In this document: one piece after another, positions 4,079 to 55,083 of the stretch | How positions within the stretch are numbered: position 1 is the first letter of the stretch | How the letters are laid out: each line of letters begins with the position of its first letter | Sequence record: NC_061443.1 | DNA length: 64,000 nt | Direction: 5' to 3' (one strand) | The notes under the pieces: generated by a model | Told to the model about the DNA's origin: nothing | The model's database searches: none | The model's input: the letters and a program-made list of their open reading frames with translations, nothing else | Translations under genes and position numbers: made by a program

Positions 4079-4900
4079 TTAATCTCCTTGAGCTGTGTAC
4101 CAGAAGTCCCAGCCAACGGTGTTCGTGCCGCTAGACTTAATGGTAAAGCCACCTAACAAGGCGTTCTCGTTCATCGCACTGGTACCGTCCAAGTTGTACA
4201 GCGTGTACGTCTTAGATTGGTTCGTTGCAGCATTCACAAAGGTGATTTGAAGGCTAATACAACGGTTGATGAACGGGCTGTTGAAGATAACGTGAATGGT
4301 ATCAGTTGTAGACTTGTTCACTACGCGACCCATGTTCTGGGTGTAGCCTGTGTTCATGTCTCGATTGCTACCAACCCACGCGTTCACAATAGGCGCGCCA
4401 GTTACTGGGTCAAGTGCCTGCGATGTACGATATTCATCAATCGCAGAGTCACGTCCTGGGTTACCCGTCGGGCCTGTAGCTCCCGTAGGACCTACTGCGC
4501 CTGTGTTACCGGTTGCGCCTACGGGGCCAGTGTTACCAGTAGGACCGTTACGTCCACGAGGACCACGAGGACCCGGGCAGCCATCGGAGCCGTCGCGACC
4601 ATCACGACCGTTAGCACCAGACAGTCCACGCAGACCCTCTTTACCTTGTTTACCTTCACGGCCAGACTTGAGTTGGTCAGAAGTAGGCAAACCAAGAACG
4701 TTTGACTGACTCCCGTCTGGCCAGACGATAGTGAGCGTACCGGTAGTAGTATCGAACTGAGCACCCTGAGAGCCTGGAATCTTCGCAGCTTCCTGCGGGT
4801 CGATGAACGCTACCGCAGTCGAAGTCTTCTTACCCAATACTTTGCCAACGGGGTCTGAACCGCCGTCGATAAGTGAAGGGTTAATTCGTGTTAAAGACAT
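4079..4900 (-). CDS. collagen-like fibre protein (paralog 4)
   Basis: 24 uninterrupted Gly-X-Y triplets (GRE...GRD) after an FD..TG.L...GLPT domain; C-terminal beta domain resembling tail-fibre tip domains. Confidence 0.85.
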   Translation of the reverse strand: MSLTRINPSLIDGGSDPVGKVLGKKTSTAVAFIDPQEAAKIPGSQGAQFDTTTGTLTIVWPDGSQSNVLGLPTSDQLKSGREGKQGKEGLRGLSGANGRDGRDGSDGCPGPRGPRGRNGPTGNTGPVGATGNTGAVGPTGATGPTGNPGRDSAIDEYRTSQALDPVTGAPIVNAWVGSNRDMNTGYTQNMGRVVNKSTTDTIHVIFNSPFINRCISLQITFVNAATNQSKTYTLYNLDGTSAMNENALLGGFTIKSSGTNTVGWDFWYTAQGD

Positions 4901-10073: not shown

Positions 10074-10565
10074 TTATGGACGGACCCAGATGGCACCAGC
10101 TTCGATCTCATTGTCGATGGCAGGGTCAGTGTCTTGCACAAAGACCATCACTTTACCTGGGTTGCCGGGAGCACCTGTTGGGCCTATAGGACCAGTAGGA
10201 CCCGCAGGACCTCTGTTACCGACATAGCCCTGCTTGCCTTGATTACCGTCTGAACCACGCGGGCCCGGGCAACCATCAGTACCACGACGACCGTCACCGC
10301 CCATCAGACCATCAAGACCATCTCGCCCGGAAGCACCTACGCCACCTTCAGGTCCATAGCCGATGCTATGAATAGTAGGCAGCCCTGCGATTTGCAGCTT
10401 ACCGATTGTAGGGATGTTCAGTGCGAGCACACCAGTCAGTTGGTCAAACGACCCACTAAGTGTGCTGTAGTCTTCTTCGATATCGACGGACACGCCGCCT
10501 TGAGTCGCTACTACAGGACCAGAAGCATTAGTCTTGAGTAGCGTAATATCAACCTTCTCTACCAT
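10074..10565 (-). CDS. collagen-like fibre protein (paralog 3)
   Basis: 23 Gly-X-Y triplets after the FD..TG.L...GLPT domain; ends in VFVQDTDP...AGAIWVRP. Confidence 0.85.
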   Translation of the reverse strand: MVEKVDITLLKTNASGPVVATQGGVSVDIEEDYSTLSGSFDQLTGVLALNIPTIGKLQIAGLPTIHSIGYGPEGGVGASGRDGLDGLMGGDGRRGTDGCPGPRGSDGNQGKQGYVGNRGPAGPTGPIGPTGAPGNPGKVMVFVQDTDPAIDNEIEAGAIWVRP

Positions 10566-10574
10566 GATTGCTCC

Positions 10575-11207
10575 TTACGGCCAGGTAGTGCCTTGATCTT
10601 TAGTAGGGTCCACCCAGATAGTCCCGGCAGCAACAGCGCCCGGCTGGGTAGCACTTACGATGATAGACAGACGACCCGCAGGACCTGCTGCGCCTGTAGC
10701 TCCGGTAGGACCTGTAGCCCCTGTCTTACCTGTAGGGCCTGTGCCTCCACGAGGGCCAGTAGGGCCGGTAGGACCCATCGGGCCTGTGCGACCATCTGGT
10801 CCCGTAGGACCTACAGGGCCAGGCAGACCATCGCGACCATCTGGGCCAGGAACACCTTGCTCTCCATCAGGACCGATATCACCATCACAGCCTTGCTCGC
10901 CTGCATTACCGTCACGCCCGTCACGCCCATCTTTACCATCAGCGCCTGTCTCACCTCTACCGCCTTGACGTCCTTCAGGGATATCAGAAGCAGTAGGGAA
11001 GCCACTTACTTTGACAGTCTGGCCGTTAGCGAACTTGAGTGTCAAGATACCGCTAGTCGCATCGAACGACGAATCACCTGTCAGTTCAGAAGGTACTTCC
11101 GAGTCGTCAGGGTTGATGGTTAACGTGCCTTGAGAAGCACGAATGGCAGTAGGCGTAGAAGACGCACCAGCTTGAATGAGGCCAGTATTTACTTTAATCA
11201 GACTCAT
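10575..11207 (-). CDS. collagen-like fibre protein (paralog 2)
   Basis: 34 Gly-X-Y triplets after FD..SG.L...GFPT; ends in IIVSATQP...AGTIWVDP. Confidence 0.85.
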
Positions 11208-12649
11208 TACGTTTTCTCCGCTTTCGCAACAATATCCGTGTTGTGTACAAGCACATCACCAACGAAGTAGCAATCGAATGGGTCAACGTCAATATCAACG
11301 GTCTGCACTTGTTCGTCTACACGGCGCATCTCCGATACAGAGACAGGACCCTTGCGACCAAGAACAGTCTGACCCGCTTGCACATCACGCGCAGGAACAT
11401 AGCGCCACACAGCATCGTCGTAAATCAAAACAGGATGTTCGTGCGTGAACTTCTGTCCATTGATAACGTAATAATGATCTTCTTGACCGAGTACGAGAGC
11501 TTTAACAGTCGCATACACGGTTGTGCCCTTGAGACTAGGCGAAGACCAGTTACGAAACTCTTTAGGCTGGTTAGAATAGCCAAGCAGCGCATCACCTACA
11601 CGCAGTTCTTCGACTTTCTTACGGCCAACAATTGTTTCAACGTCAGAGCCATACACGATACAGCCGGATGTTGCAGTGTTGATAGGGTTACGTGCAACGA
11701 CAGTCAACGCAGACTTAGCAGTGACAGTAGGGCGCGACGTTTGACCCATATCAGTTACCAGACAGCTAATGGTGCCTTTGATGATTCGATCAGCACCCAA
11801 GCCCAGTCTCAGGTAGAAGTTAACAATGCAGGTGTTTGTCTCCGTAGCGTCGAGAGTCACACCTTCTGTGGTAGTGATAGTCCATTTGTACTTATACGGA
11901 CCGACACCGCCACGCGCATTGACAGGGAGATACGCCAGCGACGTAAACACATCAGAGCCTTGCACTGTACGTTGACCAACCATATACAGGCTAGACACTG
12001 ACGCAGCAAGAGGGGTTATCGTAGGCAGAGGAGGTGCAGGAGTAACGTTCGTCGTAGGGTACAACCACACGAATACTTTACTATCGAGTGGCTGGGTAGA
12101 CGATAGCACGGCTGTAGTGATAGGCGCTGGGCCAGTGGCTCCAGTTGCACCCGCAATACAGTTAGGACCGTCATTACCGCGCGGACCGATAGGACCCGTT
12201 GGCCCTGTATTACCGTCAGGCCCTGTAGGACCGTCTGGGCCCATGCGACCCGTGTCCCCATCTGGACCGTCGTCGCCGTCTCGCCCAGGATCGCCTACAG
12301 GACCTGTCTTACCCCTATTACCCACACCACCTGGACAACCTTGTCTGCCAGTCTCACCGTCTCGACCATCACGGCCAGGACGACCGGGAGAACCCGGAGC
12401 GCCGCGACGCCCAGGTTTCCCTTCACCAAATACTGATACAGTAGGCAGACCGGGAACGTTAACTAACGTCCCGTTCTTCTTGATGAAGACCAACACACCT
12501 GTCTTGCTGTTAAATCTTACGCTGGCGAGCTGTGTTAGTGTTGCCACATCGGAGTTTTCAAACTGAACACCTCCGTCAACGCCGACTAAGGATTTACCCT
12601 CGTCATTCTGCGTTGTTTCGATTTGCGAAAGTTTTAACTGTGTTGTCAT
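11207..12649 (-). CDS. collagen-like fibre protein (paralog 1) with C-terminal Hint (intein-like) domain
   Basis: 29 Gly-X-Y triplets, a beta-rich middle domain, then C(IVYGS)...FTHEHP...VDIDV...LVHN/T, the intein block A/B/F/G pattern, at 11240-11662. Confidence 0.8.
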
Positions 12650-45984: not shown

Positions 45985-47106
45985 TTAAACTTTTCTGCTA
46001 TCAATGTCAGCTTGCGGAATATAGCGATTTTCGAAGTATTTATTGACCACTTCTACTCCGTTTAACGAGTAAACGTTACGCATACTATCACCCCAAACCA
46101 TTAGCTCTGCAAGGGTAGCGAAGTGCTCCGTAGGAACGGATTTCATTGTCCTTGCATCAAGCGAATCCGGGTGGATTTTCTTGCCACGAATAGCCTGTTC
46201 GAACTTCATACGGTCAACGTTTCGTATCATCGTATGGTCCACAAAGTGAGCCAATTCGTGCGTCATCGCATGGCCAAATGAGCGGCTATTATAACCACCA
46301 AACAGCTCGACCAATTGCTTCGGACTCATTGAAATTACACCATACAGGAATCCTGACACGGTATAAGTCATTATATGAGAACCGCCAACATCGTTGCCTT
46401 GTTTAACGATACCTACGTACAGCCGTTTGAAAGGCAGAGGCACATTAAGACCAATGCCAGGCATAACGTTTTCCTGAATGTCTTTGAGTACATAATCAGG
46501 AGGACTAACGCCTTCGAGCAGTATCTTACGTCCACCTATCAGGAGGTCATCGGCACCTAATACTTCGAGATGCACATTACCGCACTTAGGTATCTTTTGG
46601 ACAGCGTAGTTGTTCGGCGTACCGCCCGGATAGTTCGCGTTAGCATACACCAGAGCTTTCTTTGTGCCAAACAGAGGCATGTCTTGCAGACGACGCATAC
46701 GGGCTTTAAGGGATTCTGGAGTACCGCCACCTTCGGGCACAGGGTCTGCTTGTGGTGCAGGTTGCTCAGGTTCTGGTTGCACTTTGACAGGCACAGGCTT
46801 CGGTTTAGGCTTAGGTGCAGCTTCTTTCTTCTTCTCCTCGTAAGGAGTGAAGTCGAATCCTGGCTTAAAGAGGGCGTCAGGCTTAGCAGTGAATGGGCGA
46901 CTGTTTTCAATAATGCGAGCGCCGTCTTCTCCACTGATTGCATAAGCCATGTCGTATTTAGGATGGGCTATATAGTACAGGTCGTCACTTACCTTGAGCA
47001 GACCCACAACCTCGCGTGTTTGCATATGCACACCGTTTGAGATCATGGCATCTGGCCCTAGATAACGAAAGTACGAATAGTCTACAATGAATAGACCTTC
47101 GATCAT
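45985..47106 (-). CDS. hypothetical protein with shared N-terminal domain and C-terminal HExxH zincin-like metallopeptidase motif
   Basis: HAMTHELAHFVD and a downstream EHFA; Pro/Lys linker. ATG 47106 overlaps the upstream stop (TAATG); track start is 47148. Confidence 0.6.
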   Translation of the reverse strand: MIEGLFIVDYSYFRYLGPDAMISNGVHMQTREVVGLLKVSDDLYYIAHPKYDMAYAISGEDGARIIENSRPFTAKPDALFKPGFDFTPYEEKKKEAAPKPKPKPVPVKVQPEPEQPAPQADPVPEGGGTPESLKARMRRLQDMPLFGTKKALVYANANYPGGTPNNYAVQKIPKCGNVHLEVLGADDLLIGGRKILLEGVSPPDYVLKDIQENVMPGIGLNVPLPFKRLYVGIVKQGNDVGGSHIMTYTVSGFLYGVISMSPKQLVELFGGYNSRSFGHAMTHELAHFVDHTMIRNVDRMKFEQAIRGKKIHPDSLDARTMKSVPTEHFATLAELMVWGDSMRNVYSLNGVEVVNKYFENRYIPQADIDSRKV

Positions 47107-48316: not shown

Positions 48317-49192
48317 TTAACCTCTCAGTGCACCACGCGCCCAGGACTTAGCGAGAGCCAGAGTCATGCGGCTTGGGTTTTGCAGTTTGACTTCACCTTT
48401 GTGGACAGCAGTGAACGGTTCATGCGCGTTCTCTCCGCGACCCGAACGATAGGCTGCTTCATTGAAGCCGTCGAATAACGTCACGACCCAGCCTGTGGAT
48501 TTGTCAGAACACTCACCGCAGGCTTTGTCCCAGCTAATCTTACCGCACACACGTCCACCCGCATTAACCGCGTAGCTTACTTGCTCAGTGCCTTTATAAA
48601 CGTCTTGAGCTTTCAGCGTTTTGAACGTCACACGCGCAGCAGACTCAGAACGCGGCGTCATCTTCTCTTTCAGTGCTTCAATATCAAGTGAAGACCAGAA
48701 GGATTCAAACAGTGCCGCGAACTTCTGTTCGATAGGCAGGTCGATAGCATTGATCTGTGCGATGGTGCTTGAGCTATCGTTGAGCACACGGTTGATAAAG
48801 TACCCACCGAGGATGATTGGCATTTGAGTGCCTTGATCTCCAGTCGTTAGCCCAGCACGTTTCGCATACATCTCACACATCCCGATAGCAAGACGCGCCA
48901 TAGTCTGGAACGTCTGCTTCTCGGTACTGTTGGCGATCTCAGTGTAGATACGGCTTGCAATTGCAGGAACAACTGTACGCTTCGCTACACTAAGAATGTC
49001 TTCTGGTGTGATTGATTGACCGAGTTTCTTCTTGGCCGCGAGTTCGAAAGCGTTAATCAGGCTTGCTTTGTTCGCTGGTGTCAGAGACTCGCTCAACTTG
49101 ATAGTTGTCTCCTCCGAGCTGTTCACCAGACTCGGCTGCGGTGCCACCTTCAGTCTGCGAACTCCCGTCGTCTTCAATCGAGCTACTGTCAT
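48317..49192 (-). CDS. hypothetical protein (candidate head protein)
   Basis: 291-aa ORF with CAGGA RBS; IKLSESL motif near the N-terminus. Confidence 0.65.
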   Translation of the reverse strand: MTVARLKTTGVRRLKVAPQPSLVNSSEETTIKLSESLTPANKASLINAFELAAKKKLGQSITPEDILSVAKRTVVPAIASRIYTEIANSTEKQTFQTMARLAIGMCEMYAKRAGLTTGDQGTQMPIILGGYFINRVLNDSSSTIAQINAIDLPIEQKFAALFESFWSSLDIEALKEKMTPRSESAARVTFKTLKAQDVYKGTEQVSYAVNAGGRVCGKISWDKACGECSDKSTGWVVTLFDGFNEAAYRSGRGENAHEPFTAVHKGEVKLQNPSRMTLALAKSWARGALRG

Positions 49193-50297
49193 TTGTTTCT
49201 TCCTGATTAGGAGCCTGCATGTACTGCAACAGGCCAGAGTTCATAATCTCCTCGTTAACGTCAAGGCCACGGAGCGTAGCCAGATTAGCGAGGTAATTGA
49301 GAGCAGGTTCGACCATACCCAGATTACGACAGCCCCAGTAGGCAATGTCATAGCACAGGTCTAAATTAATAGCAGTCTGGTCGAACAAGAAACTTTTTGG
49401 ATTCTGCTTTGTAGCTTCAATCCCTTGAATCGCTTGTCCGATAGCATTGATGTTATCGCCACGGCGGTAGAAGATATCAGACAGCATAGCATACGCTTCA
49501 ATACGATCAGGGCGGAATGCAATCGCACGATAACAAGCGCACACAGCCTCATGAATGAAGCCTTGTTTGAACGTAGCTTTCGCCAGTTCGATGTTAGCGA
49601 TTGTAACGTAATCAGGCCACTTAGCAATGCCAGTCAGTCTGTCTACCTCACGGCGCGCATCTTCCAGCAGGTCAGGACGTTCATAATAGATGACTGAATA
49701 GCAGAGTTCACGCGCATAGTAGAAACTGCAACGGTCATCATGCGGATAGTCACCTACATCCAGACCGAGTTCCAGCAGATAGTTACGTGCTTTTTCGTGG
49801 TCTGGATAGTGGTCAGTTGCGAACGGCGCTTCAACCGATTTCAGTTGCTGACCAGGCTTACGCGAGGACAGGACTTCATGCGCACGATATTTCCAGAAGT
49901 AAGAGCGACGACGATACGCTTTCATCTGCTGGTAGTGACTGTCACCGTTACGCATCAGAATCCAAACAGCTTCTGCTTTCTTGATGCCTTGCGTATTGCG
50001 TAGCGCCTCAACCCAGTTAGGGTCATCGAAGCGCTCGTCAATATCGAGCCACACTACAAGGTCGTCTTCCGAGAAAGGCGTAGCGGCCAACTCACGGCTT
50101 GCACCTAAGTTACGTTCAGGACTAACGTCGAACGTATGATAGATGTTAGGGTGAACGAACGCCGAGATGATGTTCGTGGTTTGGTCTTCGCTGCCTGTGT
50201 CAACGATACTGATAGCGTCAGCACCAGCAACGTGTTTCAACCACTCACCGATATTCTTTTCTTCATTACGGCAGATAGCCGCTACGCAGATTCTCAT
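49053..50297 (-). CDS. glycosyltransferase family 2 with C-terminal TPR repeats
   Basis: ICRNEEKNI, IVDTGSEDQT, DxD motif WLDIDE, HYPD..K.RNYL, then helical repeats (..YR.IAFRPDRIEAY). GAGG RBS. Confidence 0.88.
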   Translation of the reverse strand: MRICVAAICRNEEKNIGEWLKHVAGADAISIVDTGSEDQTTNIISAFVHPNIYHTFDVSPERNLGASRELAATPFSEDDLVVWLDIDERFDDPNWVEALRNTQGIKKAEAVWILMRNGDSHYQQMKAYRRRSYFWKYRAHEVLSSRKPGQQLKSVEAPFATDHYPDHEKARNYLLELGLDVGDYPHDDRCSFYYARELCYSVIYYERPDLLEDARREVDRLTGIAKWPDYVTIANIELAKATFKQGFIHEAVCACYRAIAFRPDRIEAYAMLSDIFYRRGDNINAIGQAIQGIEATKQNPKSFLFDQTAINLDLCYDIAYWGCRNLGMVEPALNYLANLATLRGLDVNEEIMNSGLLQYMQAPNQEETNDSSSIEDDGSSQTEGGTAAESGEQLGGDNYQVERVSDTSEQSKPD

Positions 50298-50312: not shown

Positions 50313-51230
50313 TTATACTAAAACGTTACCGCTGTCCCACCAACGCTTACCATAGATATCAGACACACGGTAATCGAGGATAAGAGGTTGGTCCAGGTCG
50401 ACTTGTGTTATATAGCGCCCTAAGTAAGGACTCCACACTGTTTTCTCCTCAGTGTAAAGCCGTATCTCAAGCTCTATGTCGCCTTGTGAGTTCTTCGGCA
50501 CGAACGGATGCGAATAGTCTCCATCGAAACCCGCGCCGAGAGAGTCGTCAAAGTAAGTGTACGCACGAACTTCTTCACCAGAGTTGATGATGGTCGGCGC
50601 ATATACTTTGCGGTTGTAGTACGAGGTGTAATCTGCAACAGTTGATTGCCAGATGACACGTCGCTTATAAATACGAGTCACGCCTTTGCTGTCCGTCTCA
50701 GCACGGTACTGGTTATAATACCAAGTTACCTCTGCGAACTTGACAGGCTTCAATTGCGCTTGCCCAGGAGCATAGCGCATGAACGGCTTCGCAGTGAAAC
50801 GATGATATGTCTTCTGCGTGTTCAGGCGATACAGCAGAACCTGATACGTGTACCACTGATAAATATCCAGGGTAATCGTACCACTATCCGATTGCTGCGT
50901 ACCGTTGGTCAGTATGTAAGAGAAACAGTCTGCACCAACGTAACCGCTTCGTGGGCTATAGAGAAACGCATCGTTGAAATAGTTCAGACGCACGGTACCT
51001 ACCATTGGGTCATTGACCTTAATAGCAGAAAGGCGCCAACCTCTTTGAGCTGGCACCTTATCGAGTACACCCTCTGTAGGGCTGTGCAACGTTACTTCAT
51101 CACGAGCGCCTTGTAAGATCTTTTCGAGTGTTATCTCGGATTCACCCGAGTTACGCACCCGCACCGTAATGTTCGGAGCTAGTGGCTTGTAGTTTCGCCA
51201 GTAGTCGAACGTACAAGGCAAAGAGAGCAT
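50313..51230 (-). CDS. virion protein with cadherin/Ig-like (Big_9-like) domain
   Basis: P..GTVRLN....FLYSPRSGYVGADCFSYILTNG..S..GTITLDI. Confidence 0.55.
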   Translation of the reverse strand: MLSLPCTFDYWRNYKPLAPNITVRVRNSGESEITLEKILQGARDEVTLHSPTEGVLDKVPAQRGWRLSAIKVNDPMVGTVRLNYFNDAFLYSPRSGYVGADCFSYILTNGTQQSDSGTITLDIYQWYTYQVLLYRLNTQKTYHRFTAKPFMRYAPGQAQLKPVKFAEVTWYYNQYRAETDSKGVTRIYKRRVIWQSTVADYTSYYNRKVYAPTIINSGEEVRAYTYFDDSLGAGFDGDYSHPFVPKNSQGDIELEIRLYTEEKTVWSPYLGRYITQVDLDQPLILDYRVSDIYGKRWWDSGNVLV

Positions 51231-51232
51231 AG

Positions 51233-53179
51233 TTACTCCAGTTTGTACTTGCTCTTAAACTCTGCGAGTCCCATAACAGGGATGCCTTTGTCCATCGCTT
51301 TCTGGAGTTTCGCAGAACCAGAGCCAGGGTCTTTTGCGATCAGTATCGTCGTATCGGACTTCATGCTATCAGAAGCAGTTCCACCGAGTTCGACAATACG
51401 CTTCATCAAGTCACGGTCACGAATGCCAGTGAATGCAACGTTAATGCCTTTGAGCTTCGCACTAACCACTTTCACCTTCTTCGGAGGAACGAGAGTCACG
51501 CCCATGTTCGCAGCCATTTCGTAGGACTTCACGGCAGCTTCTGCAATGGCAGGTCCGAGTTTATCAATGCCGTGCATAGCGCTAATCTTCAACGTCAGGT
51601 CAGCGGTATAACCACGCTTGAGGTAATACTCAAGATTAGGGATAGCATCAACAACTTTGTCGAACGTAGTGTTAGCACCGCGCATAAAGAATGACGCTGT
51701 AGCTCTCAACCACGTATTCATAGGCACGCCCGCTTTCAACGACTTGAGGTCTTTCGCCAACTGACGACCACGAGAGTCACCAACTATCTCACGCAACGCA
51801 CCCATTGAAGCATCAAACAATTGCTCAGGCGTTTTAATACCAGACGCAATAAGCATTTTGCAGGTACCCGGTCCCGTATTCGCAACGTCAAGCCCTTTCA
51901 AGAACGAGCCAAGCATACGCGCATCAGCAGCAGATGATTTCGTTTTGACAACGAACTCTACACCACTAATCTTGTATGGCACGTCAGGCAGCTGAGGCTT
52001 CTTAGCAGGCTTGAGAATCTCCATGATGTATGGGATGACCTTGCCGCTTCGAATCAATTTAACCTTAGCTCCAGGACCGAGTGGCCGCTTAGGACCAAGC
52101 ACTGTGCCTTTCTTCTTCGGCTTGAGATAGCCGTGCTCAACATAGAAACCGTTGTGCGCAGAAGCACGTTCAACTGTCACACCGCCCGGCATGATAGTTG
52201 GCGGGAAGATAGCAACAGGAGCCATCACGCCGTACTTGGACTCTTGGTAGATGATCTCTTTGACAGTCACGATAACCGTATCAGACTCAACGTTCATCTT
52301 GAACTTAAAGGCGTGTCGTGGGTTAGACGCTGTAGCTTTTGGAGTTGCTACGTCGCGTGTCATCACGATGCCGTCGAGTTCATACTTCGCCTTAGCGATA
52401 CGCTTGTCCAACCAAGGAATGAGTTCTTCCTGATTGGCGAAACGCAGCGGACCGAAGTGACGAACTACCTCGAATCCCCAACGCTCCAGTAGCTCAAACT
52501 GCTTAGACTGTTTGTCCGTTGCACCTTTACCTGCAAGAATACCGAAGCACACCATGTGGACGTACTTGAACTCTTTAGGAGTTTCGAAGTTACGCACAAG
52601 GCCGGACGCAGCATTACGTGCAGCCTTATACTTCCCACCAGCAGACTCGTGCATCTTCGCCATGAAGGTCTTATAGGGAATCAGCGCTTCGAAGCGCATG
52701 ATGACCGTACCTTTCTCAGGTATCTTCTGAGGGATACTCATGGCGGGTATATGGTGAGAAACATCTTTACCGTGAGTAGCATCACCACGAGTGAACGCTT
52801 GTACTGGCACGCCTTTTTCATAAACGAGTTCAATGCTCAGGCCATCCAGTTTGTCTGTAAGAATCCAATCAACGTCTTCGGCCAAGGCTTTAGACAGTTG
52901 CTTACCGCCGAGCGTATACTGATCGAGACTTGCCATAGGCACAGGCAGCTTAACATCGGAGTCGTCACGCGCGCCAACCTTGCGCGCCAGCTTTGACTTA
53001 GGCCAACGCGTGTCGATGTAGCGACGAATATGGTCATAGACCGCATCCGATATCAAGCCTTCCGAATCAGTGTGAAACGCATCATCAAGATGCGCCACAA
53101 GTTTCGTTGTCTGCGTCAGATTGAGCGTGTCCAGAACCTTATCGGGATTCCTTTCGAGCCGCTTCAATGAGATTTGCAT
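51233..53179 (-). CDS. ligA: NAD-dependent DNA ligase
   Basis: SDAVYD (domain Ia), MASLD, KLDG active site, TRGD..HG, DGIV, AFK, OB fold (RSGKVIP), HhH and C-terminal BRCT. ATG 53179 has a GGAG RBS (track start is 53203). Confidence 0.93.
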   Translation of the reverse strand: MQISLKRLERNPDKVLDTLNLTQTTKLVAHLDDAFHTDSEGLISDAVYDHIRRYIDTRWPKSKLARKVGARDDSDVKLPVPMASLDQYTLGGKQLSKALAEDVDWILTDKLDGLSIELVYEKGVPVQAFTRGDATHGKDVSHHIPAMSIPQKIPEKGTVIMRFEALIPYKTFMAKMHESAGGKYKAARNAASGLVRNFETPKEFKYVHMVCFGILAGKGATDKQSKQFELLERWGFEVVRHFGPLRFANQEELIPWLDKRIAKAKYELDGIVMTRDVATPKATASNPRHAFKFKMNVESDTVIVTVKEIIYQESKYGVMAPVAIFPPTIMPGGVTVERASAHNGFYVEHGYLKPKKKGTVLGPKRPLGPGAKVKLIRSGKVIPYIMEILKPAKKPQLPDVPYKISGVEFVVKTKSSAADARMLGSFLKGLDVANTGPGTCKMLIASGIKTPEQLFDASMGALREIVGDSRGRQLAKDLKSLKAGVPMNTWLRATASFFMRGANTTFDKVVDAIPNLEYYLKRGYTADLTLKISAMHGIDKLGPAIAEAAVKSYEMAANMGVTLVPPKKVKVVSAKLKGINVAFTGIRDRDLMKRIVELGGTASDSMKSDTTILIAKDPGSGSAKLQKAMDKGIPVMGLAEFKSKYKLE

Positions 53180-53220: not shown

Positions 53221-55083
53221 TTAGGAGGCGATAGGGTCTTTGTTGACAGGGTAATCTTCCACCATGTCGTACACGCGATTGAACAACTTAGGCGTCATAT
53301 CTTTCACATGTTCGGCGTAGTCAAAGAGGTTCTGTTTACGCGCACGGTTCACACGGACCTGACGTACTTCATCTGGACTGTTGGTGATATCGTACAGCGT
53401 ATAGATAACGATGTTGTCAGAAGCGTTATGCGTACTCACACGGACAACCAACCAGTCACGTTTGAGTTTAGCATCTGCCTTGAACTGCAACACATCACCT
53501 TCTTCTGCCTCTTCGGCGCGAGCGCTCGGAGTAGATTGGTTAGCAGCCGCAATCTTCTTGGCAGTTTCGTTGGCTTCCTGTTCAGCCGCAGCAACGTCAG
53601 AGTCTTGGTCTTCGTCAGCACCAGCTTCATCTACTGCGTCAGTAGCATCTGCCTCTGAGTCATCGTCAGCCGATTCGTCATCTTCGCTTCCGTCACCTTC
53701 TGAATCAGCTCCTTCGTCGTCAGCATCCTCATCAGCCACGGATTCATCGTCGCTTCCATCGGATTCATCATCCCCATCTGATTCATCATCAGTGTCTGAA
53801 TCGCTATCGTCAGGATCTTCTTCTGCATCCGTTTCTTCCTCTTCTTCGCCGTCTGAGGAGTCTTCTTCCTCTTCTTCTGGCGGGGCTTCGGCAGGCTTCT
53901 TACCTTTCTTCGCACGTACCTTAGACGGCGCAACATCTTCTTCGTCGTCTTCTGGTTCGTCGATATCAGACAGGTCAAGCGCAGGCTCGTCGTGGTCTTG
54001 CGAATCATCGCCTCCAAACAAGTTGCCGATGGAGTCTTCGATGTTAAACATGTCACCCGCGAACGGACTACGCGATAGGACGTCTTCGAGTTTCTGCTCG
54101 TCAAAGTCCAAATCAACTTCTACTTCTTCAATCGCATCGTCCAGTTCTTCGTGCTCGATAACACGCACACGCTTACCACGTTTGTCGATCCCATCAGAAT
54201 AGACAGTACGGACTTCGGCCTTAGGAGCTTCAATCTCACCGCGCTTAACCTTGTTGCGAAGATCACGCATCTCAGCAGAGCGTTCCGCAGCAGTCTTACG
54301 CGCCTGCTTCTGGAGCTCTTTGCGTTGTTGCTTCTGCTCCAGGATTTTAGCGTTGTTGGCGAGGCGTACTGATTCTTCCTCTTCCAACTGCGAACGCTTG
54401 CGACGTCGGCGCACTTGCTTGCGATACGCTTTGACCGTATCGACGTCAACTTCACCCTTAGGCCAATCATTGAAAGGCAGGATGTTAGTGTCGTGGACAA
54501 GCAGGTCGTACTGCGCATCATCAATTTTGACATACAGTCCTTCGGTATTGATGACAATGCCACCTTTACCTTGACGCAAGAAACGTACACCAATCATGTC
54601 GTTCTTGTAGAGCTTGAGCATACCCTTAGATGTTTTCACAGGGTATTCCATGCTCGGAACCATACGCCACTGGTAGTTATCGAAGTTGATACCGTTCACA
54701 GCCTCAGCCTTCACAGACTTAGGAGCGAAACGGGCAGCATCGAACTGCACACGATTAAGCTGGCGTTGCAGCGTTTGAGCACCAGCAGTCTTCGTGCGTG
54801 AATCACGTTGAACAACATCAGGCACTTTGCGCAGCTTTGAACTACGCTCCATCAGGAACAGACCAGTAGTCTTATCCAGAGGGAAATCAACGTGAGGCAT
54901 GTCAGCAAAGATAAGCGTGTAGCGTCCGCCATTGCGCAGCGGGAGAATGCCGAAAGTATCTCCTTCACGAATCATACGTTTATGAGTTCGTTGAGATACT
55001 TCTTTTCCGCGTGAACCTTTGTACTTCATCCACGCGTACTTCGTTACTGCATCTTCGTGAGATGCGGACACGGAAAGTATCAT
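53221..55083 (-). CDS. hypothetical protein with two copies of the shared domain, coiled coil and long acidic tract (candidate internal head protein)
   Basis: Starts MILSVSASH at ATG 55083 (track start is 55110); D/E-rich region about 53560-54130. Confidence 0.7.
   Translation of the reverse strand: MILSVSASHEDAVTKYAWMKYKGSRGKEVSQRTHKRMIREGDTFGILPLRNGGRYTLIFADMPHVDFPLDKTTGLFLMERSSKLRKVPDVVQRDSRTKTAGAQTLQRQLNRVQFDAARFAPKSVKAEAVNGINFDNYQWRMVPSMEYPVKTSKGMLKLYKNDMIGVRFLRQGKGGIVINTEGLYVKIDDAQYDLLVHDTNILPFNDWPKGEVDVDTVKAYRKQVRRRRKRSQLEEEESVRLANNAKILEQKQQRKELQKQARKTAAERSAEMRDLRNKVKRGEIEAPKAEVRTVYSDGIDKRGKRVRVIEHEELDDAIEEVEVDLDFDEQKLEDVLSRSPFAGDMFNIEDSIGNLFGGDDSQDHDEPALDLSDIDEPEDDEEDVAPSKVRAKKGKKPAEAPPEEEEEDSSDGEEEEETDAEEDPDDSDSDTDDESDGDDESDGSDDESVADEDADDEGADSEGDGSEDDESADDDSEADATDAVDEAGADEDQDSDVAAAEQEANETAKKIAAANQSTPSARAEEAEEGDVLQFKADAKLKRDWLVVRVSTHNASDNIVIYTLYDITNSPDEVRQVRVNRARKQNLFDYAEHVKDMTPKLFNRVYDMVEDYPVNKDPIAS

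Follow-up and report, generated by a model that had tools for sequence, protein, structure and literature searches.

Which molecule receives the sugar of a glycosyltransferase encoded among the virion genes of a phage? The question is raised by the gene gp147 of the Erwinia phage pEa_SNUABM_2, an Alexandravirus jumbo phage with a genome of 265,442 bp. The gene lies in the stretch of 64,000 nucleotides analysed here (the window; its positions 1-64000 correspond to 62001-126000 of NC_061443.1, and coordinates are those of the window unless stated otherwise). From the sequence alone, an earlier note had described 49053-50297 as a glycosyltransferase with a GT2 catalytic domain and tetratricopeptide repeats (TPR), and had taken the Thr-rich collagen fibres of the virion as its candidate substrates. 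Our analysis points to an enzyme of the protein-glycosylating type, with the collagen fibres as its probable acceptors.

The stretch 49053-50297 was found to be exactly one open reading frame (ORF) of 414 aa with an ATG start, which lies on the minus strand, a correction to the earlier note. The protein is named 'beta-1,4-glycosyltransferase' in RefSeq, a label inherited from PHROG 13126 (phrog_13126, E 2e-114); we found no support for a sugar acceptor or for a beta-1,4 linkage, and the name is misleading. No NCBIfam family matched gp147, and residues 5-117 matched the Pfam GT2 model PF00535 with 28.5 bits, above the curated cut-off of 23.3. The AlphaFold2 model, built on an alignment, had a predicted local distance difference test score (pLDDT) of 86 and a predicted template modelling score of 0.79. 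It showed a GT-A domain at residues 1-165 (49803-50297, minus strand; delimited by the secondary structure of the model, the profile match to GmaR and the invariant residues), followed by ten antiparallel helices at residues 174-354 (49236-49778, minus strand) and by a disordered, acidic, Ser/Glu-rich C-terminal tail at residues 363-414 (49056-49211, minus strand; pLDDT <50). No membrane helices were present in the model. The DxD motif corresponds to D85-I-D87 (50037-50045, minus strand), and both Asp residues were invariant in an alignment of 28 homologues, as were the nucleotide-binding D33-T-G-S-x-D38, R68, H140 and E141. The modelled GT-A domain superposed on those of WrtF, SunS and TarS. 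By the family-model threshold, the DxD motif and the fold, gp147 is assigned to the GT2/GT-A fold, and metal-dependent sugar transfer is predicted.

The TPR repeats of the earlier note were also recovered, although by another route: no Pfam TPR model matched gp147, so that the assignment rests on sequence, profile and fold matches to PDB entries. Residues 237-300 matched consensus TPR proteins (phmmer, E 4.5e-12), and the helices, which form about five TPR-like hairpins, superposed on the TPR domains of PilF, OGT and CTPR with VIA-align Z scores of 15-17 over residues 187-360. Pfam TPR domains were present in distant gp147 homologues. The tail of 52 residues ends in a conserved SEQSKPD-like sequence and is confined to the subclade of the Erwinia phages, Dickeya phage AD1 and the Yersinia phage; the JA29-type enzymes and that of Salmonella phage Sen-NF are without it.

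Comparison with solved structures placed gp147 among enzymes that glycosylate proteins or peptides. In a Foldseek search of the PDB with the gp147 model, SunS and ThuS ranked first and matched over the whole length (E 4e-13). VIA-align gave a Z score of 20.4 for SunS (7msp_B; root mean square deviation 3.6 Å over 263 residues) and of 18.6 for ThuS, and these two-domain matches outscored the single-domain ones, namely WrtF for the GT-A domain and PilF, OGT and CTPR for the TPR domain. The family profile searched against PDB sequences found GmaR with E 8e-31 (gp147 positions 4-163, the whole GT-A domain), ThuS with 8e-19 and SunS with 1e-17, whereas the best glycopolymer or teichoic-acid enzyme, TarS, reached merely 3.5e-7. 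An enzyme of Clostridium tagluense aligned end-to-end with gp147 (26% identity over 348 aa, E 4e-26); it is named 'TPR repeat-containing glycosyltransferase' by NCBI and its gene adjoins a collagen gene with 58 GPT triplets. A search seeded with the Clostridium homologue returned no C. difficile enzyme among the 120 of 2472 relatives listed. The closest characterised relatives, GmaR, SunS and ThuS, are all GT-A+TPR protein or peptide glycosyltransferases, and gp147 is therefore considered to be of the protein-glycosyltransferase type. By its predicted build and by its similarity to GmaR, ThuS and SunS it fits the TPR-fused protein glycosyltransferases of the SgtA/GmaR/SunS/ThuS type, the class that the earlier note had named, and it very probably glycosylates a protein.

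The strongest evidence on the identity of that protein is the genomic linkage of the family in independent lineages. We scanned IMG/VR with the family alignment and obtained 75 loci outside the clade of pEa_SNUABM_2, with homologues at 23-36% identity. Flanks of up to 10 kb were searched for collagen-like ORFs, defined by at least 8 Gly-X-Y triplets and called Thr-rich when at least 40% of the Y positions were Thr. A collagen-like ORF was found in 36 of the 75 loci, and in 32 it was Thr-rich, with GPT, GAT, GDT and GYT as typical triplets. The collagen ORF of the 36 linked loci was on the same strand as the enzyme gene in 34, upstream of it in 29 and within 2 kb in 22, several being only tens of bases away. 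Many of the 'negative' loci lack upstream sequence; one of them, with an upstream flank of 1 kb (L022), carries a glycosyltransferase identical to that of a collagen-linked locus (L021). Eighty random viral loci, picked by means of an arbitrary 14-mer, served as control; seven of them had a collagen-like ORF and two a Thr-rich one. When the glycosyltransferase loci were trimmed to +-4 kb, and so made shorter than the controls, the counts were 27/75 against 7/80 for collagen (p = 4e-5) and 23/75 against 2/80 for Thr-rich collagen (Fisher test, p = 1e-6). In the two Thr-rich random loci (L120 and L138) the collagen ORFs are large, and the short sequence available for each contained no GT2-TPR homologue.

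The linkage is not the property of one branch. Clustering at 50% identity gave 36 homologue clusters, 15 of them collagen-linked, and in a maximum-likelihood tree the linkage was scattered over the whole family; the enzymes of the phages PaBG and Lu11 fell in a well-supported group of 29, of which 16 were collagen-linked. The linked viral ORFs were 400-3,270 aa long and matched tail-fibre PHROGs, some of them also via non-collagen C-terminal domains, and one linked contig carried terminase and portal genes just downstream. In bacteria, mostly Bacillota, a collagen-like gene stood directly beside the enzyme gene in 47 of 80 homologue loci, and in 40 it was Thr-rich. The linkage, found in viral and bacterial loci alike, thus ties the gp147 family to Gly-X-Thr collagen proteins in phages as well as in bacteria, an arrangement whose biochemistry is known from SgtA and BclA3 of C. 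difficile. The bacterial collagen genes reach 200 Gly-X-Thr triplets, and among the hosts are some that are not known to form spores (Turicibacter, 'Tenericutes', Muribaculaceae and metagenome-assembled genomes of Patescibacteria). Some of the bacterial collagen-linked loci may be prophages.

In pEa_SNUABM_2 itself, the collagen paralogues claimed by the earlier note are four collagen-stalk genes, all on the minus strand and all passing the Pfam Collagen model. They are gp104 (4079-4900; 24 triplets, E 7.5e-15), gp108 (10074-10565; 23 triplets, E 3.8e-11), gp109 (10575-11207; 34 triplets, E 5.9e-15) and gp110 (11207-12649; 29 triplets, with a C-terminal Hint-like domain; Pfam Collagen and PT-HINT, phrog_38766). 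In five phages of the clade, whose major capsid proteins are down to 46% identical, 19 of the 20 collagen domains have a Cys residue in their tenth triplet. The charged half before this Cys has Thr at Y in 17 of 174 triplets, and the half after it in 90 of 377. The corresponding counts after the fixed Cys in pEa_SNUABM_2 were 7/14 for gp104, 2/13 for gp108, 10/24 for gp109 and 5/19 for gp110, together 24 of 70. The Thr clusters are best preserved in the gp104-type and gp109-type paralogues, and gp104 and gp109 are proposed as substrates. The exact triplet count of each paralogue (23, 24-25, 29 and 34) was kept across the same five phages, and the lengths of the collagen stalks seem, from these counts, to be under strict selection.

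pEa_SNUABM_2 is one of the 'hairy' jumbo myoviruses of the Y3/AD1/JA/PaBG/Lu11 lineage (PMC6143709, PMC7412058). The glycosyltransferase and the four collagen paralogues were both present in all five sampled members of this clade, and both were absent from five of five outgroup jumbo phages whose capsid protein is related (Motura, RSL1, BcepSauron, PpuM-Aura and GR11A; 30-36% identity), a distribution that fits their co-acquisition in the lineage of pEa_SNUABM_2. The gp147 gene, which the earlier note had placed among virion genes, sits in the late virion operon, together with those of the head protease, the major head protein and the sheath. No other Ser/Thr-rich protein was found in the pEa_SNUABM_2 genome. 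With no Ser/Thr-rich protein besides the fibres and with the gene in the late virion operon, the fibres are favoured, and the genome offers no better acceptor. A poly-Ser ORF of 366 aa (genome positions 253754-254854, minus strand) was considered as an alternative acceptor and ruled out, being an antisense frame of gp325. The gp325 gene itself, outside the window (genome positions 254175-254984, plus strand), codes for a hyperacidic protein of 269 aa with long Asp/Glu runs between Lys/Ala-rich segments.

We propose that gp147 is a cytoplasmic, metal-dependent (DxD), inverting GT2/GT-A enzyme whose TPR domain would serve for substrate docking. The acceptors would be Thr (or Ser) residues in Gly-X-Thr triplets of gp104, gp108, gp109 and gp110, mainly those that follow the fixed Cys, in the Thr-rich half, and the donor, as a best guess, an N-acetylhexosamine or hexose from the uridine diphosphate (UDP)-sugar pool of the host. 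No sugar-synthesis or sugar-nucleotide genes were found anywhere in the genome, as the earlier note had claimed for its part of it, and neither was a second glycosyltransferase nor a PF00534 GT-B enzyme; for this reason the transfer of a single sugar from the host pool is predicted. Modification would take place late in infection, on fibre chains that are unfolded or newly made, and before the sugar-bearing fibres enter the virion. What the analysis shows directly is the fold, the motifs, the homology and the linkage of the family to Thr-rich collagen genes; the acceptor in pEa_SNUABM_2, the sugar and the timing, like any effect on fibre stability, adsorption or shielding, are inferred.

Several points weigh against the collagen fibres as acceptors. 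The gp147 gene is 37-45 kb from the fibre genes and not adjacent to them; conserved beside it are the genes of a DNA ligase, of an Ig-like protein and of a gp146-type protein. Thr occupies just 24% of the Y positions after the Cys in the clade, compared with 40-98% in enzyme-adjacent fibres elsewhere, and some orthologous fibres have 0-1 Thr (NCTB, 164 aa; PaBG, 459 aa; Lu11, 173 aa). The Thr pattern of the clade fibres is thus compatible with glycosylation sites, yet weaker than in enzyme-adjacent fibres. The random loci used as control were unmatched for host taxon or environment, and the co-presence of enzyme and collagen genes in the clade is a single evolutionary event, with many other clade-specific genes sharing the pattern. 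Our literature searches found no proteomic, glycan or expression data for pEa_SNUABM_2 or its relatives and no virion proteome for the clade. The target named in the earlier note thus gains support from the family linkage, but not from the moderate to low Thr content and the gene distance in pEa_SNUABM_2. Because of this distance and of the moderate Thr density, glycosylation of the fibres by gp147 is a well-supported inference rather than a demonstration, and we regard it as probable.

The acceptor could also be another phage protein, namely one of the two neighbours of gp147 or a head or scaffold protein of the head-morphogenesis module. The upstream neighbour gp148 (50313-51230, minus strand) has an Ig-like domain (Pfam Big_9; phrog_36743), its protein-atlas leads were Ig/cadherin-like clusters only, and it is conserved in synteny in Sen-NF, PaBG and NCTB. 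The downstream neighbour gp146 (48317-49096, minus strand; RefSeq, phrog_31537) is also conserved and gave no Pfam and no protein-atlas match. The order ligase, ~300-aa protein, glycosyltransferase, gp146-type protein and head protease is shared by the Erwinia phages, Sen-NF, PaBG, Lu11 and NCTB, despite glycosyltransferases just 25-44% identical in the last four, and this conserved block speaks for a local acceptor, as does the fact that elsewhere the substrate gene usually adjoins the enzyme gene. Freeman et al. are said to have described, in 2023, virion glycosylation in mycobacteriophages, on capsid and tail-tube proteins. However, gp146 and gp148 have no repeats or Ser/Thr-rich tracts, elsewhere no linkage to Ig-like or head genes was seen for any relative of the enzyme, and the family-wide partner is Thr-rich collagen, so that an acceptor of this kind appears doubtful.

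Some further features of this region were observed. The ligase and the glycosyltransferase are fixed inside the head-morphogenesis module throughout the clade, and in Lu11 a ~100-aa protein replaces the Ig-like protein of the block. The annotated TTG start of gp146 overlaps the final 44 nt of the gp147 gene (49053-49096), and an alternative ATG-started gp146 frame, 48317-49192, would overlap it by 140 nt. The genes gp143 and gp150 (45985-47106 and 53221-55083, both minus strand) flank the region of the head protease and the glycosyltransferase; the N-terminal part of both products is a KMPT-N domain ('KTSC and metallopeptidase N-terminal fusion domain'; E 1.8e-31 for gp143 and 2.7e-17 for gp150), and no further domain is recognisable in them.

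A non-protein acceptor, that is, phage DNA with a glycosylated hydroxymethyl base, or a host surface polysaccharide or lipopolysaccharide, has a low probability. GT2 enzymes mostly make polysaccharides, and the RefSeq/PHROG name, together with a phrog_841 (GtrB-like) match over the GT core that is weak (E 1e-4), points the same way. For DNA there is the NAD-dependent DNA ligase gp149, two genes upstream of gp147 (51233-53179, minus strand; RefSeq; same order in Sen-NF, PaBG, Lu11 and NCTB). The earlier note had seen no DNA-modification neighbours; to say that DNA-related ones are missing would not be quite exact, as the window contains, in addition to this ligase, thymidylate kinase and Nudix genes. 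However, the thymidylate synthase of the phage passes the equivalog model TIGR03284, a deoxycytidine monophosphate deaminase and the thymidylate kinase are present, and no second gene of the thymidylate-synthase family (hydroxymethylase-type) was found in the genome. The genome-wide lack of GT-B and sugar-nucleotide genes and the modelled protein's lack of membrane helices also count against it, as does the far weaker match of polysaccharide and teichoic-acid GT2 enzymes to gp147 compared with protein glycosyltransferases, and both the fused TPRs and the link to collagen genes are characteristic of protein glycosylation. Neither DNA nor a polysaccharide is thus a likely target of gp147. Two specific candidates were rejected: a DNA glycosyltransferase of the T4 alpha/beta-GT type, given the missing hydroxymethylase companion, the missing GT-B enzyme and the protein glycosyltransferases as nearest folds; and a GtrB-like bactoprenol glucosyltransferase of O-antigen conversion, a class marked by C-terminal membrane helices and GtrA/GtrC partners, given that gp147 is predicted to be soluble, has TPRs and is the sole glycosyltransferase of the genome.

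Glycosylation of a host protein, in takeover or superinfection exclusion, for example of flagellin by analogy with GmaR, is hardly to be expected. GmaR has a GT2 + TPR architecture and doubles as an anti-repressor; this Listeria flagellin O-linked N-acetylglucosamine (O-GlcNAc) transferase is the best sequence relative with a structure, and the gp147 family is placed by PHROGs in the category 'moron, auxiliary metabolic gene and host takeover'. The category was assigned automatically, flagellar genes were not found in linkage with the enzyme, and gp147 belongs to a late structural operon as a core syntenic gene across phages of Erwinia, Pseudomonas and Salmonella. Such conservation across so different hosts fits a phage-encoded acceptor better.

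The least probable alternative is that gp147, like its best structural matches SunS and ThuS, is an S-glycosyltransferase acting on the single Cys in the tenth Gly-X-Y triplet of the four paralogues, fixed as this residue is in the clade, since the family-wide partner collagens are Thr-rich and mostly without Cys, so that O-linkage is favoured, SunS is by profile score more distant than GmaR and the clostridial SgtA-like enzymes, a disulfide knot is a simpler account of a fixed Cys in a collagen stalk, and no glycocin-type neighbourhood surrounds gp147. If true, an S-linked glycan on the fixed Cys would be the first of its kind for a virion and likewise for a collagen triple helix.

Glycosylation of the collagen fibres, the reading that we prefer, would have consequences beyond this phage. 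To our knowledge, phage particles are generally treated as unglycosylated, some mycobacteriophages apart. If the reading is true, a widespread SgtA-like family glycosylates collagen-like tail fibres in many phage lineages, including the whole 'hairy' jumbo-phage clade on Erwinia, Dickeya, Pseudomonas, Salmonella and Yersinia, hosts that comprise plant and human pathogens. Sugars on the stalks could stabilise triple helices that are free of hydroxyproline, and they could alter adsorption, hide the fibres from antibodies or proteases and influence the behaviour of biocontrol phages, pEa_SNUABM_2 among them. A practical outcome is an annotation rule, a GT2-TPR gene beside a Gly-X-Thr collagen gene, and the correction of a misleading database name. 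Literature searches found no description of the glycosylation of phage collagen tail fibres, and the consulted papers on PaBG, Dickeya phages and jumbo phages are silent on the glycosyltransferase gene and on collagen.

Among the closest known systems is SgtA of C. difficile, a protein of 358 aa with a GT-A domain (1-260) and TPRs (262-358) that places beta-O-GlcNAc on Thr of the GPT repeats of BclA3; sgtA adjoins bclA3, the gene of this collagen-like exosporium protein (PMC7157674), and the earlier note had cited this precedent correctly. Like SgtA, gp147 is one soluble chain with an N-terminal GT-A/GT2 domain and C-terminal TPRs (414 aa compared with 358 aa). SgtA is metal dependent and its acceptor is Thr in Gly-Pro-Thr triplets, and the clostridial full-length homologues of gp147 likewise adjoin GPT collagen genes. 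In contrast to SgtA, gp147 carries an additional acidic tail, is encoded by a lytic jumbo phage with a Gram-negative host and is not adjacent to its presumed substrate genes, which code for short stalks (23-34 triplets) with moderate Thr; adjacency of this kind was seen in 36/75 viral and 47/80 bacterial homologue loci. GmaR of L. monocytogenes (PDB 22ao) shares the NEE, DTGSxD, RN and DxD motifs with gp147, but its acceptor is flagellin and gp147 has no flagellar context. SunS and ThuS (PDB 7msn, 7msp and 7msk) are similar in length to gp147 (~420 aa) and just 13-16% identical to it. Their acceptors are Cys (and Ser) residues in small bacteriocin precursors, the products of adjacent genes, whereas no glycocin precursor, export or disulfide genes were found beside gp147, whose neighbours are the ligase, the Ig-like protein, gp146 and the head protease.

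Virus-encoded enzymes that act on the virus's own structural proteins have also been described. Glycosyltransferases of mycobacteriophages are reported to modify virion proteins made in the cytoplasm (Freeman et al. 2023, as cited in PMC12619734). There the sugars are said to go not to collagen repeats but to extensions at the C-termini of capsid and tail-tube subunits. The L230 protein of Mimivirus is a collagen lysyl hydroxylase/glucosyltransferase that acts on the virus's own collagen-like proteins (PMC9614988). It differs from gp147 in transferring Glc to hydroxylysine, in belonging to a GLT25D1-like + PLOD-like family and in having a eukaryotic host. We therefore rate the SgtA-BclA3 pair, mycobacteriophage virion glycosylation and L230 as known, and as new an SgtA-like enzyme that appears to have been recruited by phages, unlinked from its presumed substrates and established as a core gene of a jumbo-phage clade.

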